A DNA stretch of 64,000 nt, from contig MCFH01000024.1 in NCBI GenBank assembly GCA_002104945.1, positions 186,001 to 250,000 on the forward strand, given 5' to 3'. The notes beneath the pieces were generated by a model. That model saw only the letters and a program-made list of their open reading frames with translations, was not told the DNA's origin and did not search any database. Position numbers and translations under genes: made by a program. The stretch comes from Piromyces finnis finn. Taxonomy: Eukaryota; Fungi; Neocallimastigomycota. Below are positions 28,659 through 35,168 of this stretch, one piece after another; position 1 is the first letter of the stretch; every line of letters starts with the position of its first letter.

Positions 28659-28983
28659 ATAGAATGTTATCTTTGAAATATTTATACAATTAATAGTATT
28701 ATATTATATTTAGCTTAATATTTAGTATTACTATTTTATTACTTTATTAACTGTATTTTTTTTATATTTATATTTGTTAATATTAAATATTTTTTTTTTT
28801 TCAATTCTTAATAATATTATATCATGTTTATAATGTTTATATTTTATTGTTATTTTATTATTATAATTATTAATATAGTGTAGATTAATATATCCATTTT
28901 AATTTTTTTTTTAATTTTTTTTATAAATTGAACAAATCCGTCTTTTTTCACGGACAGAGAGATGGAGGATAGAGAATTTATAA

Positions 28984-31900
28984 TTATTGTTGTCTATTGA
29001 GTTGTTCATAATGATCATTACATGAAAAAAGATTAACTTTATCACCATCGACTTCATAAATAAGTCTATATTGTTTATCTATTCTTCTTGAATACATATT
29101 TCTATTATGCCATTTTAGTTGTTCGGGTTGACCTATTCCTTTAAATGGATCCTTTTTTATGGCTTCAATTAACTTTTTAATTTTCTTATAAATATCAGGA
29201 CTATCTTTTTTCCATCTATTTATATCTTTATTACATTTATCAGTAGATACTCCCCATTCTTCATTATCTTCTGGTATATCTCTTTCCATTGAAAATATTT
29301 GCATTTTTGAAGAAGCTTCTTTTTTAGACTCATATCTTTTTAAAATATTTTCAATATCTTTTCTTTTTTTTATCAGTGAACTTTTTAATAATATCAAATA
29401 CTGTTTTATCATTTATGTCTTTTATAGATGTCTTTGCCCTTTTCTTGATTAATAATTTTACTATTCGAAGGAAATATTCCTCTGTTGATTCCATTAATGC
29501 AGTTCTTTTTTTCTTATTGGATGAATTGATTATTTTTTCATTTTTATTAAGTAATTCGACTGTAACGTCAAAATGACCATTTCTTGCTGCACGAATCAAG
29601 GCATTATCTCCATTGATTTTGTTTTTAAATGAAAGATCAGCATCATAAGATAATAATATTCTTACTAATTGATGATTATTATTATTGGAAGCGATTATTA
29701 ATGGGGTATCGCCAGATTTATTTGTTTTGTTTATATCGATGAGTAATTCTCCATCTTTATATTTACTTTCCATCAATGAATCTATTTTATCAATGTCACC
29801 ATTAGACACAGCTTCGAATAATTCATCATGAATATTTTTGATAAATTCAGGCGTGACTTCTTCTCTGGAGAACACGCTTGGTGTTGGTTCAACTTGTTCT
29901 TTGGATGGTTCTGTTGGTGTTGGTACAATTTCGGTTTCTTCTTTAGAAGGTTCAATTTGTTGTTCTTCTTTTTCTTCTTCTTCCTCTTCTGATTCTAATT
30001 CCGATTGAATTAAATTAATAATTTTCTTTCTATTTGTATTCTTGGCACAATCTAATACAGTTTCATCAAATTCGTTTTTCTCTTTAAGAACTTTGCTCTT
30101 GCTTGATTTATCCAATTTATTTAATTCTTCTAATATACGTTTAATTAATCGTACATCTCCACTTTCAATAGCATACATTAATGGGGTAAGACCGAAGAAA
30201 TCTACAGTACTGATGATATTAGCATGATGGCGTATTAACATATCAATAACATTCCTATGCCCTTGTGCCATAGCACACATTATTGCTGTGACACCATCAG
30301 CACTAGGCATATTAACATCAATTTTTGGGTGGTTTAATAACAATTCAACGATATCTTCGTATCCTTTCTCAGAAGCTAAAATCAATGCGGTATCTCCGTA
30401 ACAATTTATTGCATTGACATCAATTTTAGGATGTTTTAATAAAGATTCAACAATGTCTTTATATCCATATCTTGAGGCATAATTCAATGGAGTAATTTTA
30501 TTTTTATTTTTAATATTAACGTCGACTTTAGGATGATTGACTAACATCTCAACTATTGAGGCACGTTCATTTCTTGTAGCATACATTAATGCAGTGTAAT
30601 CTTCATCATCTTGTAGGTTCACGTCGATGTTTGGATGCTCTAATAACAATTCGACTTCTGATTCATTTCCTCTTTGAGCTGCATACATCAATGCAGTAAT
30701 ACTATAGATATCTTGAGCGTTGACATCGATTGTTGGTTGATTTAATAAAAGCTTTAATTCATTACTACATTTATTTCCAGCTGCATAAATCAATGCGGTG
30801 TATCCATTTTCAGCCTTCTTATTAATTTCGATTTCAGGGCGATTCAATAATAATTTTACGATTTCTCCATTACCGAGTTGTGAAGCAAACATTAATGCAG
30901 TGACACCTTCGTTATTACTTAAATTAATATTGATATCCTTATGTTTCAAAAACAATTCAGCTATTTCAGTTTTTCCAAAATATGCAGCAAACATTAATGG
31001 TGTATCACCGGTTTTAAATTTTGTATTCACATTAATGTCAAAATGATTCAAGAGATGTTTAACTTTTTCTATGTTTCCATTTTCAGTTGAATTAAAAATT
31101 GATAATGTTCTTAAATTTTCATTTAAATATTCTGCCAACATTTCAGCAATTTCATTATGTCCATATTGTATGGCAAGTAAAAATGCTTGAGCATATTGCA
31201 TTTCAGGATTGATAATGGGTTGATCCAATAATAATTTAACAATGTCTAAATGACCATTTGTAGCTGCAAACATCAATGCTGTTCCTCCTTCATTATTTTT
31301 GATATTTACATCAATTTTTGGATGATTTAATAAAAGTTTAACTATTTTTATATTTCCTTGTTGGGATGCACACATCAATGGTGTGTCACCATTATCCATT
31401 TTTGCATTAACATTGATATCAAAACGATTCAAAAGTTGTTAAACTTTTTCTATATTTTCACTTACAATGGATGTGAAGAATGATAATGTTCTTGAATCTT
31501 CATCTACATATTCTCCCAATAGTTGAATGATTTCACTATGTTCATATCTCATAGCAAGTGATAATGCATGTTTACCTTGTGTTTTAAGATCGATAGTGGG
31601 TTGATCCAACAATAATTTAACAATGTCTAAATGACCATTTGTAGCTGCAAGCATCAATGCTGTTCCTCCTTCATTATTTTTAATATTTACATCAATTTTT
31701 GGATGATTTAATAAGAGTTTAACGGTTTCTAAATTTCCTTTTTCAGCTGCGCACATTAATGGGGTAAAGAGTTGTGGCCTATCCTGAATATTAACATCGA
31801 TATTTGGTTGCTCCAACAATAATTTAACAATTTTTTCATAGTTTTTTTGTTCTGATGCGAAAATCAATGGAATGAATTCATTAATATTCGGATTATTTGA

Positions 31901-32297
31901 ATATTTTATTCTAACATTAATATCAACAGGATTCGTTTTAAGCATAAATTTTATTTTATTATAATTCCCATCAGTAATCATTTTATGGAAAAGATTATTA
32001 GCAATTTGAATATTGACATTAAGCATATCAATGCTTTGTTGAACTTCTATTGGTGCTTTATTCTTAGCTAACTGTATATTAGCACCATACTTTAATAATA
32101 ACAGAGTTTTTTCAAGACTTTTTTCTTGAAACGCTATAGTTAATGCAGTATATCCATTCTTATCTTGAGCATTAACTTCCACACACCTATCTCCTTTATC
32201 ATTTTTTATATCCAATACTTCTTTTATAATTTCACAGTTTGCATATTTTGTAGCATACATTAATAATGTACGTTTATCAGAGTTTTTAATGTTAAAA
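28984..32297 (-). pseudogene. Ankyrin-repeat (~25 repeats) protein with C-terminal YoeB/Txe toxin domain; interrupted by in-frame TAA (31439-31441) and a +1 A in an A8 run (~29364-29371)
   Basis: ORFs 31439..32260 and 29351..31432 are in the same frame, separated only by TAA; the paralogous repeat has AAA/Lys there. ORF 28984..29412 joins ORF2 if the A8 run is A7 (TDKKRKDIENIL). An acceptor-like site lies at 32298-32299 and no upstream exon was found. Confidence 0.8.
29008..29256 (-). CDS. yoeB: YoeB/Txe-family (RelE/ParE superfamily) ribosome-dependent mRNA interferase domain
   Basis: WKKDSPDIYKKIKKLIEAIKKDPFKGIGQPEQLKWHNRNMYSRRIDKQYRLIYEVDGDKVNLFSCNDHY aligns without major gaps to E. coli YoeB as recalled (WQETDKRIVKKINELIKDTRRTPFEGKGKPEPLKHNLSGFWSRRITEEHRLVYAVTDDSLLIAACRYHY). 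Confidence 0.93.
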
Positions 32298-32649
32298 CTA
32301 TAATAAAAGTAAGACTATATTTAGAATAATAGAATATTAATTCATTATTTATATAAAAATAACTATTTAAACAATATAAAATGAAAAACTCTTTTTTTTT
32401 TTTTTTAATATAAAATGTTTTAAACTTTGATAAAAAAAAATAAATAGAACATTATATTTTAAAATTTTAAAATGAATTATTTTTTATTTTTTTTTAAAGA
32501 TAGAATAGAATTGTAAAAAAAAAAAAAAATAAAGATAATCATATTCATTTTAGTTTAATTTTAATTATTATTATTATTATTATATGTGTATGTGTGCTAA
32601 TAAATAATTTTATTTCTATTTCGATTTCTATTTTTAATTATAGGTAGAA

Positions 32650-35168
32650 TCATTTAATAAAATTGGTATCTGGTGGTAATTCATAGACCAGGCAACGTTT
32701 TAAATTTTTTTCATCATTTTTTATACTAATGAGTTTTAAATAGTTAAAACAATGTTCTATTACCAATTTTCCTTTATTTGGAGGAATCTCTAATACCAAA
32801 TAGTTTGTTTTCTTTCTATCATAAATTAAATTTTTATCAATACATTTTTGGAGAAACTCGCTGATTTGTTCATAACAATGAATTCCCTTTTCACCACCAC
32901 CAAGTAGGGCTAATTGTGGTTCATATTGAATTGATTTACTAAAACTTTTAATCTCTTTTTCGGTCAAATAGGGTGGGTTACACACTACTACATCAAAATA
33001 GGTTGTTTCCCCTTCATCTTCAGAAATAAAAGAACGGTGTAATTCTTTATTCTCAGAAAGGGATGAAAAATCACCTTTAATAAATTTTGCATTATCTAAT
33101 AAATGAATTATAAAATAAATAAATAATGATGAACAATATATATATAATATATAATGTATAATAATTAGAAGAATTACATAATAACATAATATAATAATAA
33201 TAAAATAATTAAAATAATTATATTTTAAGTTCACTACCTTTTTGATCTCCTAATAAAGCTTCTTTATTTTTATTTGCTAATTCTAAAATTTCATCAGAAA
33301 GATCAATGCCGACACCCTGCGAATTATTTATATTTTTTAAACATGATAAAAGAATACAGCCACTACCCGTACCTAAATCCAAAATACGATGAGGTTTCAA
33401 ATCTATTGTAGCTTGAACTAAAACTTCAGTGGCTTTTCTTGGTATTAAGCAATTTTCATTAACGTAAAATAAATTTCCAAAGAATTCCTTTTTTTTTTTT
33501 TTTAACAATTTATTATTGCAACAATAATATATTAATTTATTAAAAAATAGTAATGTGAAAAAAAAAAAAAAAAAAAAAAAAGATAATAAGGATATATGAA
33601 ATTAATAAATATATAACTAAATAAATAATAATTTATAATAATTATAATAACAATAATATATATACTTTTCTTTTTTTCTGTTTTTTTTTTTTTTTTTTTT
33701 TTTTCTAAATTTTTACCTTTTCCCCTAAAATATATGGTGTAGGTCTTTGATCATTATGTATGTGATCAATTAAAAATTTATTATCCTGATCCGAATTTTC
33801 AAATGAATCCAATGCTTTTTCAAATAAAAGTAATTCTTCTTCTTGTTTTCTTTTCCAAAATTTTTCTTCCTTTGCTCGAATAGCATTAAATTTAGTTGGT
33901 TCTGGACTGGTAAAACTCATATTTTCTTTAGTTTTTGGATGTTGGAAATAGAGTGAGGTAAGGGTTAAATAAAGACCTTTATCTTTTGAATTTGCAATTT
34001 GTTTGGTATAACGGGTATTTCCAATGATCGGATGCCCTAGTTTAATCATATGTTTTCTAGGTTGAAATCTATTATAACCTTTTTTAGGTGTTATTAATAC
34101 AGTGGTAAGATATCCAGAACCATTACGAGTTTTTGAAATTTTTGATATGGCATATTCTGTGATACATTCTTCATTATCTATTACCGAGGAAATTATTTGT
34201 TTTTCATTTTCATTTCCTTCAATTCTTCCATGAACAATTCCCATATAGGTTTGAACTATACTATTTTTTTTTAAATCTTCAACAAGTACATTATAACTAG
34301 ATTCTGTTTTTGCTGCAATGACCTTTAATTTTTTTTTTTTTTTTTTTTTTTTGGAATTTAAAAATTAGATTTTATTTTTTTTTTTAAAAAAAAATACTAA
34401 GTAATTCAAATCTATTCAAGTATTCCATCAATATTAATTAATTAAATAGTTAAAAAAAAATAATGATATTTACAAATCCTGGGGTTGCTTTATCAAGTAA
34501 AGAAACACATTTTGGATTTTCTAATTTGTCATTGGAATTTGATGGTTTTAAATTGTATTTTAATGCAATTTCTAAAGTACTTGATAATTGATTATTTAAT
34601 GTTGTACCAGAAGGTTTCCTTTATTCATTTTATTTATTATTTTTTATATTTTTATATTTATATTTTTATTTTATGAACAACGAATTTTAAATTTTAAAAA
34701 ATAAAAATAATAATTTAATTATAAATTTAAAAATCTAATTTTTGAGTTTCTGTAATAAATTTAGATTTCAATAAATTTCAACTATATGCATAAAATGTAA
34801 CTTGTTAAAACTGTTATTATTATATACCATACAACAGCCATTTCATCATCTTCATAACGTATATCTACTTTAAAACCTTCCTTATATTTTAAAGTTTCTT
34901 CTATTTTACGGGTAACCTTTACAACATCACCAGCATTAAGAGTTTCAAAACCTCTTGCCGGTTTTCCATTAATTAATACTTGCCCTTGTTTACAAGCAAG
35001 GTGACTTTGACTTTTAGAAATAATTAAATGGGAAAAGTAATTACGAATAAAAGATCCAACTTTTTCACCTTCATTTTCTTTAGTAATGATGGTTGAATTT
35101 CTTTCATTGCTTTCTTCTAAAGTCTCTTTACTTACTTCAGTTAATCTTGGTTCACTTTTAACTTTCAT
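32650..35168 (-). CDS. prmC: Fusion protein: S4 + RluA-family pseudouridine synthase-like domain and HemK/PrmC release-factor glutamine methyltransferase, ~5 exons
   Basis: S4 'GQVLING', 'YEDDEMAVVW/KPSG', 'VSLLDKATPGF/VIAAK', 'TYMGIVHG', 'RKHMIKLGHPIIGNTRY' and 'LYFQHPKTKENMSFTSPEP', then PrmC 'PTPYILGEK/EFFGNLFYVNENCLIPRKATEVLV', 'LDLGTGSGCI', 'VVCNPPY' and 'EPQLALLGG'. The exons splice in frame. Confidence 0.88.

Follow-up and report, generated by a model that had tools for sequence, protein, structure and literature searches.

YoeB is a small addiction toxin of bacteria and depends on its antitoxin; in the YefM–YoeB (Axe–Txe) module of E. coli (PDB 2a6q, 4v8x) it is a stand-alone protein of ~85 residues. 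Long ankyrin arrays that end in an enzymatic 'warhead' are found among the effectors of host-associated bacteria, exemplified by Spaid of Spiroplasma and the ankyrin toxins of Rickettsia and Wolbachia. Many gene transfers from bacteria to fungi have also been reported in the Neocallimastigomycota, with fibrolytic Firmicutes or Bacteroidota as the usual donors. The locus described here lies at 28984-32297 on the minus strand of a 64,000-nucleotide stretch of the genome of the anaerobic fungus Piromyces finnis (assembly GCA_002104945.1, contig MCFH01000024.1, positions 186,001 to 250,000; hereafter the window). It comprises three open pieces that together encode an ankyrin array followed by a YoeB/Txe-type domain. 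The fusion belongs to a family that is previously undescribed, and the copy in the window is best read as a young pseudogene of this conserved family, probably still transcribed.

A 2025 survey of multidomain toxins of the RelE/ParE group, which have the BECR fold, reported a few eukaryotic cases, among them BrnT–BrnA in fungi and two YefM–YoeB fusions from eukaryotes; multidomain proteins in which no antitoxin could be identified were left aside (Gerdes 2025, PMC11980606). According to the same survey, the YoeB family is spread widely across bacterial phyla and is absent from archaea. Like the fused toxins in that collection, the present family places a BECR-fold mRNase domain within a larger protein. 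In the fusions surveyed, however, the toxin is linked either with its cognate antitoxin or with defence modules (PMC11980606), unlike in the ankyrin–YoeB proteins. Neither ankyrin nor any genus of anaerobic fungi appears in the text and supplements of PMC11980606, and a 2026 preprint on BECR classification does not mention the fusion. Our literature search returned no paper describing an ankyrin–YoeB fusion and none pairing YoeB with the Neocallimastigomycota; the seven papers in which YoeB and ankyrin occur together are genome descriptions, judging by the titles and abstracts of six. The expansion of ankyrin proteins in anaerobic fungi is on record without an assigned function (PMC8778642).

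The identity of the two modules is clear from profile searches. Pfam Ank_2 matched the 273-residue first piece with an E-value of 4.4e-39 and the 693-residue second piece with 1.7e-109. The 142-residue third piece matched YoeB_toxin (PF06769) with 83.3 bits against a curated cut-off of 27, over profile positions 4-80 of 80, and NCBIfam TIGR02116 (Txe/YoeB) with 83.4 bits against 51.8. An initial annotation, made from the letters of the window, had already placed an ankyrin array and a YoeB domain here and had proposed the profile test whose outcome has just been given; its placement holds, with both modules on the minus strand. Its list of conserved active-site residues was equally accurate. 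In a phmmer comparison with solved structures, the domain aligned gaplessly with residues 12-84 of E. coli YoeB (2a6q), retaining E46, K49, R59, R65, H83 and Y84 in the E. coli numbering. The domain thus shares both family and catalytic residues with the toxin of the YefM–YoeB module, and it is predicted to be a ribosome-dependent mRNA endonuclease. It differs from the stand-alone toxin in forming the C-terminus of an ankyrin protein of ~900-1700 residues, and many fusion members carry a basic tail beyond the terminal His-Tyr. The ankyrin repeats had been put at ~25. A crude motif count gives 16 canonical repeats, mostly at a spacing of 34 residues, so that ~25 is plausible only if degenerate units are included.

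Relatives of the fusion were found by long queries and exhaustive searching. While a word-based search with the 142-residue piece was limited by its length filter to four short bacterial matches, an exhaustive HMMER search with the same piece gave ~25 clusters (at 50% identity) of longer proteins ending in YoeB, up to 1220 residues in length. Clusters with a C-terminal YoeB domain, mostly of hundreds of residues, ranked above almost all bacterial YoeBs of ~85 residues. The C-terminal part of the second piece retrieved ten proteins with both Ank and PF06769 matches, and a metagenome scan added only 5 further loci. Uninterrupted members measure 870-1740 residues, which bears out the suggestion that ankyrins joined to the YoeB frame would turn up in other genomes. 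As far as the sequences tell, family members have a long ankyrin array that a variable linker joins to 4-5 further ankyrin repeats, which form a conserved module; a flexible linker of ~30 residues then leads into a complete YoeB/Txe-type domain. The window shares this C-terminal module, including the motif NGDNALIRAA within its 4-5 ankyrin repeats, the cap helix Y-x-x-I-K-x-x-L-E, the linker and YoeB. Altogether, intact fusion genes are conserved in at least 4 or 5 divergent lineages of anaerobic gut fungi and in Alphaproteobacteria with genomes of ~1 Mb.

Members fall on contigs of two types. The fungal-type contigs have flanks of 13-18% guanine plus cytosine (GC) with hardly any open reading frames (ORFs). 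One fungal-type member, P0011, occurs in 19 metagenome contigs; another, P0008, occupies L009:531-3695; and a third, P0135, belongs to an NCBI assembly, where it is flanked on its 1.29 Mb contig by a PP2C gene and a Peptidase_M3 gene model. That Peptidase_M3 model spans 4.7 kb for a product of 683 residues, which points to introns. The fungal copies of the fusion that were examined are all intronless single ORFs. The longest member seen is an uninterrupted ankyrin–YoeB frame of 1744 codons on a fungal-type metagenome contig (L101:393-5624). In P0135 (L121:7383-8000) the frame stays open for 206 codons upstream of the annotated start and carries no signal-peptide-like leader. The active site is altered in two members that are otherwise intact: in P0008, Glu replaces the equivalent of R59 (…YSREI…), and in P0005 (L006:2225-5233) the G-R-P-E loop is three residues short and position R58 is occupied by Met. 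Given these deviations, an active nuclease need not be present in every member.

The bacterial-type contigs have 35-39% GC and are densely packed. One bacterial fusion adjoins the rplK-rplA-rplJ-rplL operon and another adjoins genes for MlaC, dUTPase, BamD, MiaB, YbeY and CorC. A scan of species-representative genomes yielded one complete ankyrin plus YoeB match, in a metagenome-assembled genome (MAG) of ~1.0 Mb from the Alphaproteobacteria. One metagenomic fusion lies next to a gene for ribosomal protein L1, whose product shares 93% identity with the L1 of the fusion-carrying MAG and at most 68% with that of 120 other Alphaproteobacteria. The order to which this MAG belongs, possibly Rs-D84 of the GTDB, is represented by 58 species-level genomes of 0.5-2.2 Mb, at least four of them with fusions. 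Five ankyrin-rich genomes that fall outside this order (three Alphaproteobacteria MAGs, Rickettsiales and Rickettsiaceae included, an alphaproteobacterial genome of 0.56 Mb and a Dependentiae MAG) have L1 proteins of only 41-59% identity. The carrier G001 has many other ankyrin genes, and 19-52 first-look candidates were counted in genomes near it. The combination of a reduced genome with many ankyrin matches, seen in G001 and its order, is a profile typical of eukaryote-associated bacteria. Some neighbours of the bacterial fusions also deserve mention. A gene for an AAA_14/DUF4143 ATPase adjoins the fusion in two loci (L104:3846-5051 and L105:3621-4817) and a Fic/DUF4172 gene lies just downstream of it in L105, which hints at a mobile or defence-island setting. 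On the contig of the Alphaproteobacteria MAG, an ORF for a Gp49-like, HigB-type toxin (PF05973, 75 bits; L012:1919-2278) is found 1.2 kb downstream of the fusion.

The initial annotation took the copy in the window to be intact. It is not: no single frame runs from a start codon to the YoeB stop. The first two pieces share one frame and are separated by a TAA codon, the frame then changes by +1 at ~29353, and the N-terminal leader is absent. At the TAA, a paralogous repeat further down the same gene has Lys. At the frame change, the conserved Tyr of the family is read just before the TGA that ends the second piece, and the conserved Glu-x-Ile follows directly in the downstream frame; an A8 run lies 11 bases upstream of the break. 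The pieces are colinear with seven intact members, with the junction exactly at the break. The relatives show homology to the window only from 32287 onwards, and the ATG that opens the first piece (32260) corresponds to a conserved internal Met of an ankyrin repeat. The relatives' N-terminal leader of ~70 residues could not be traced, as tblastn with seven N-termini gave no match upstream of 32287. Rescue of the TAA by an intron was considered and rejected; a GTAAGT occurs 20 nucleotides upstream, but the candidate introns would be only 16-22 nucleotides long. Residue-for-residue alignment with the paralogous repeat and the colinear contigs described below refute it as well.

The breaks were checked by aligning contigs from public sequencing runs of the same organism to the window. 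Contigs of a DNA run (X1) cover 28930-31258 and 31304-31640 with zero differences. Contigs of a second run from a separate study, probably of RNA (X2), match exactly over 28828-31259, 31304-31640 and 31685-32330, and a contig of a third run (X3) matches exactly over 29040-29421. A contig from a 2022 study (X5) covers 28932-29726 with four substitutions and no gaps. In sum, the frame-shift site is gap-free in four runs, each from a different study, and two of these (X1 and X2) bridge the TAA. Since contigs of independent runs carry both breaks, these are not assembly errors. An artefact, whether a homopolymer error or a chimera with bacterial DNA (the latter named in the initial annotation as a possible refutation), could be suspected because the A8 run adjoins the frame change and the window comes from a long-contig assembly, a type prone to homopolymer errors. 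However, short-read contigs of the four runs agree with the window base for base at the frame-shift site and those of two runs do so at the TAA, and a homopolymer error at the frame change was rejected on the evidence of the four runs. Further, the gene sits inside a contig of more than 250 kb, with flanks of 11-20% GC and a fungal-type codon usage (GC content at third codon positions, GC3, of 0.13-0.21), and intact fusions exist on other fungal and bacterial contigs. An artefactual origin of the breaks or the fusion can therefore be set aside as extremely improbable. If X2 is RNA, the locus is transcribed as one unspliced message whose first ATG opens the 273-residue piece.

How the fusion came to be shared between fungi and bacteria was addressed with trees. 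In a tree of 125 YoeB domains, all 33 fused domains, bacterial and fungal and including that of the window, form one clade (support 100/94) apart from the 92 stand-alone domains, which include the YoeBs of the carrier bacterial order. The single clade argues that the fusion arose once and moved between the domains of life as a whole gene. The proposal that the toxin domain had been acquired from rumen bacteria stands as far as bacterial kinship is concerned; however, the toxin did not come alone, as the whole fusion is shared with Alphaproteobacteria. Trees of the C-terminal module (262-266 columns) are star-like with a backbone polytomy. They group the window with the fungal P0135 (95/91) on long terminal branches, 0.97-0.99 for the window, which is among the longest in the family, and 1.0-1.08 for its sister P0135. 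A single fungal clade is compatible with the data according to the approximately unbiased test (p 0.46). GC3 is 0.13-0.26 in the fungal copies versus 0.31-0.35 in the bacterial copies.

A transfer from bacterium to fungus is favoured here, because YoeB is a bacterial family, the carriers own YoeB–YefM pairs and ankyrin genes, and the fungal copies are intronless and ameliorated. The sequence of events may have been as follows. The fusion would have originated in bacteria, as an ankyrin effector that was exported against eukaryotes and carried an RNase warhead, and the whole gene would then have passed to a fungal ancestor. In fungi the leader would have been lost and codon usage would have drifted to the fungal type. 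The copy in the window would later have acquired the nonsense codon and the +1 frame change, and it came to lack the N-terminus. In its intronless, bacterial-type gene on an AT-rich chromosome with ameliorated codon usage, the case resembles the transfers from bacteria already reported in the Neocallimastigomycota. It differs from the usual ones in its partner, a small-genome Alphaproteobacterium, and in its cargo, a toxin-domain fusion rather than a metabolic or carbohydrate-active enzyme gene. The exchange ties the anaerobic fungi to an unexpected bacterial partner lineage.

The reverse history, in which anaerobic fungi joined a previously captured YoeB to an ankyrin array of their own before gut Alphaproteobacteria acquired the gene and added a leader, is a minority possibility that we consider unlikely. 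It would fit the reported expansion of ankyrin families in the Neocallimastigomycota (PMC8778642), the longer and more diverse fungal branches, and the backbone polytomy, with the pair of the window and P0135 on one side of the midpoint root. However, YoeB is a bacterial family not found in archaea (PMC11980606), the carrier bacteria themselves possess many ankyrin genes as well as stand-alone YoeB–YefM pairs, and the fungal copies lack introns throughout those examined.

A toxin of this type raises the question of restraint. The observation that no YefM-like ORF lies near the locus proved right and can be extended, as Phd/YefM (PF02604) has no match across the whole 56 Mb fungal genome. In contrast to the YefM–YoeB module, then, the fungal locus has no YefM/Phd gene adjacent or genome-wide, and the host is a eukaryote. 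Of four carrier bacteria, G001 alone gave YefM matches, one of which adjoins a match to stand-alone YoeB; none were found in G170, G171 and G174. No conserved small immunity gene lies directly downstream of the fusion, as the downstream genes differ in all six bacterial loci (flavodoxin, AAA_14/DUF4143, Fic and genes of unknown kind). The initial annotation had an acidic linker leading into YoeB and proposed that the linker might replace the antitoxin in cis. This idea has lost ground: the acidic linker lies ~215 residues upstream of YoeB, ahead of a further 4-5 ankyrin repeats, and it is not conserved in relatives, while the actual linker from the ankyrins to YoeB comprises ~30 poorly conserved residues. 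An AlphaFold model, which is confident overall (predicted local distance difference test 89, predicted template modelling score 0.86), shows this linker (157-166) as disordered. A search with the model for similar folds returned only designed ankyrin proteins and is uninformative on YoeB or on contacts between the modules. A conserved antitoxin-like peptide in cis is disfavoured by the distance and poor conservation of the acidic linker and by the predicted disorder and poor conservation of the true one; steric restraint by the ankyrin module is left possible. If the domain is active, the family would offer a test bed for the restraint of a toxin without its antitoxin.

Export is suggested for the bacterial branch of the family. 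Nine bacterial-type members start with M-K/R-K followed by a hydrophobic stretch of ~15 residues that resembles a Sec signal when judged by eye. The leader is absent from the fungal members and from the window, for which the lack of a signal peptide had been correctly called. On these grounds we infer that the bacterial members may be exported and may serve as effectors. Like Spaid-type proteins, the bacterial members unite a secretion-type leader with a long ankyrin array and end in a toxic enzyme domain, and their ~1 Mb genomes are rich in ankyrin genes; the ankyrin–YoeB warhead differs in being a YoeB-type RNase. If the domain is active, the family would be a naturally occurring example of a bacterial, ribosome-dependent mRNase that acts inside eukaryotic cells or is directed against them. 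An analogy to fungal NOD-like receptor (NLR) and HET proteins, drawn in the initial annotation, finds no domain support: Pfam detected no NACHT, NB-ARC or HET domain in the window pieces or the intact fungal members, only Ank families and YoeB. Both couple a repeat array with an effector domain that could be lethal; however, the order in ankyrin–YoeB is repeat then effector instead of effector–NOD–repeat, and the bacterial counterparts of the fusion have a secretion leader (by eye). One could go further and see here a new class of antitoxin-free translational toxins, exported by gut Alphaproteobacteria with reduced genomes (possible symbionts or parasites of gut eukaryotes) to cut mRNA on eukaryotic ribosomes and kept intact by fungi as an ankyrin-gated RNase for self-defence or cell death, with the ankyrin module replacing YefM and the window copy as a recently lost allele. 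This extension is speculative and, in our estimate, rather unlikely.

The state of the window copy itself can now be weighed. That it is a pseudogene is probable in view of its two independent lesions, the missing N-terminus, the lack of a paralogue (it is the sole PF06769 match in the 56 Mb genome), the long branch and the predominance of nonsynonymous strain differences. The last point comes from X5, in which three of the four differences are nonsynonymous and one is synonymous; the sample is tiny, but the excess fits relaxed constraint. From the first ATG, at most the ankyrin fragment of 273 residues is predicted to be translatable, and no ankyrin–YoeB protein should arise from this copy. 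Annotations that 'reconstruct' the locus would over-call a toxin.

Several observations weigh against our account, both of the pseudogene and of its history. The three frames run without a stop for 273, 693 and 142 codons, whereas the flanking sequence has one about every tenth codon. The YoeB piece scores 83 bits in Pfam versus 63 and 74 bits in two intact fungal relatives. The frame change falls on a stop codon (UAU UGA A), and programmed +1 shifts occur at stop-codon sites of this type in other genes. The RNA status of X2, X3 and X5 is a tool's guess, which for X2 is suggested by size. On the side of history, the star-like module trees give no direction of transfer, and the secretion leaders were recognised by eye. 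The open frames and the score above that of intact fungal relatives are the reason for calling the pseudogene young; the latter implies either that decay is very recent or that the domain is still under some selection.

The same features could be claimed for a functional gene, in which a programmed +1 ribosomal frame shift at UAU-UGA-A would throttle toxin output, with translation starting past the TAA or reading through it. The coincidence of the frame change with a stop codon directly flanked by the conserved Tyr and Glu-x-Ile, the remarkably open frames with their pristine YoeB domain, and the gap-free passage of a 0.5% diverged strain across the site would all agree with it. However, the intact relatives that were listed or aligned (~25 long proteins) do without a shift at this position. 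The TAA is, moreover, an independent second lesion; it interrupts the same frame 2 kb further upstream and follows the first ATG in the probable transcript. Most strain differences are nonsynonymous, and no stimulatory element was seen, although none was looked for. Taken together, a programmed shift is very improbable.

Alternatively, the pieces might act separately, with an ankyrin fragment of 273 or 682 residues or a free YoeB from an internal Met as the product. The first ATG of the probable transcript does open the 273-residue piece, and the third piece has in-frame Met codons ahead of the YoeB domain. However, a free YoeB, if translated, should harm a cell whose genome is free of the antitoxin, downstream ORFs of eukaryotic mRNAs are rarely translated, and a single contig runs from 28828 to 31259 with no sign of separate transcripts. 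Truncated ankyrin fragments also have no conserved counterpart in the relatives. Separate use of the pieces is therefore quite doubtful, if somewhat less so than the programmed shift, and a decaying, probably transcribed copy remains the preferred reading.

The features of the locus are collected in Table 1. GC content is ~20% in the window overall and 28-31% across the ankyrin–YoeB gene.

Table 1. Features of the ankyrin–YoeB locus, in window positions and in the order in which they are read.
Feature	Position	Strand	Remarks
Piece 1, ankyrin repeats	31442..32296	minus	ORF 32260-31442, 273 aa; in-frame stops just upstream
In-frame TAA interrupting the ankyrin array	31439..31441	minus	Lys in paralogous repeat; bridged by X1 and X2 contigs
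Piece 2, ankyrin array, variable acidic linker and conserved C-terminal 4-5 ankyrin repeats	29354..31438	minus	ORF 31432-29354, 693 aa
Acidic/Pro-rich low-complexity linker between long array and C-terminal ankyrin module	29876..29995	minus	Not conserved in relatives
Zone of the +1 frame change, from A8 run (29371-29364) to TGA (29353-29351) ending piece 2	29351..29371	minus	
Piece 3, +1 frame: end of last ankyrin cap helix, poorly conserved linker of ~30 residues, YoeB domain	28987..29350	minus	ORF 29412-28987, 142 aa
YoeB/Txe-type RNase domain	29008..29238	minus	Residues 59-135 of the 142-aa piece
Stop codon (28986-28984) and probable 3' untranslated stretch	28828..28986	minus	Probable-RNA contig of run X2 ends at 28828

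Within the ankyrin array, window positions 30841-31766 form an internal tandem repeat with a period of 381 nucleotides (~127 residues) in three copies that are ~70% identical. The copy furthest upstream (5') has the TAA at its end. Upstream of the locus, a methyltransferase gene (Methyltransf_25/MTS, with an NPPY-type motif) occupies 32650-33508 on the minus strand; it is split by an apparent short AT-rich intron, which confirms the eukaryotic setting. Contigs of X2 and X5 both depart from the window at 32723 with identical 30 letters, possibly at a splice junction or into a paralogue of the neighbouring gene. Finally, a weak ORF beginning 'MNMIIFI…' is present at ~32545 and bears only a loose resemblance to the bacterial leader.

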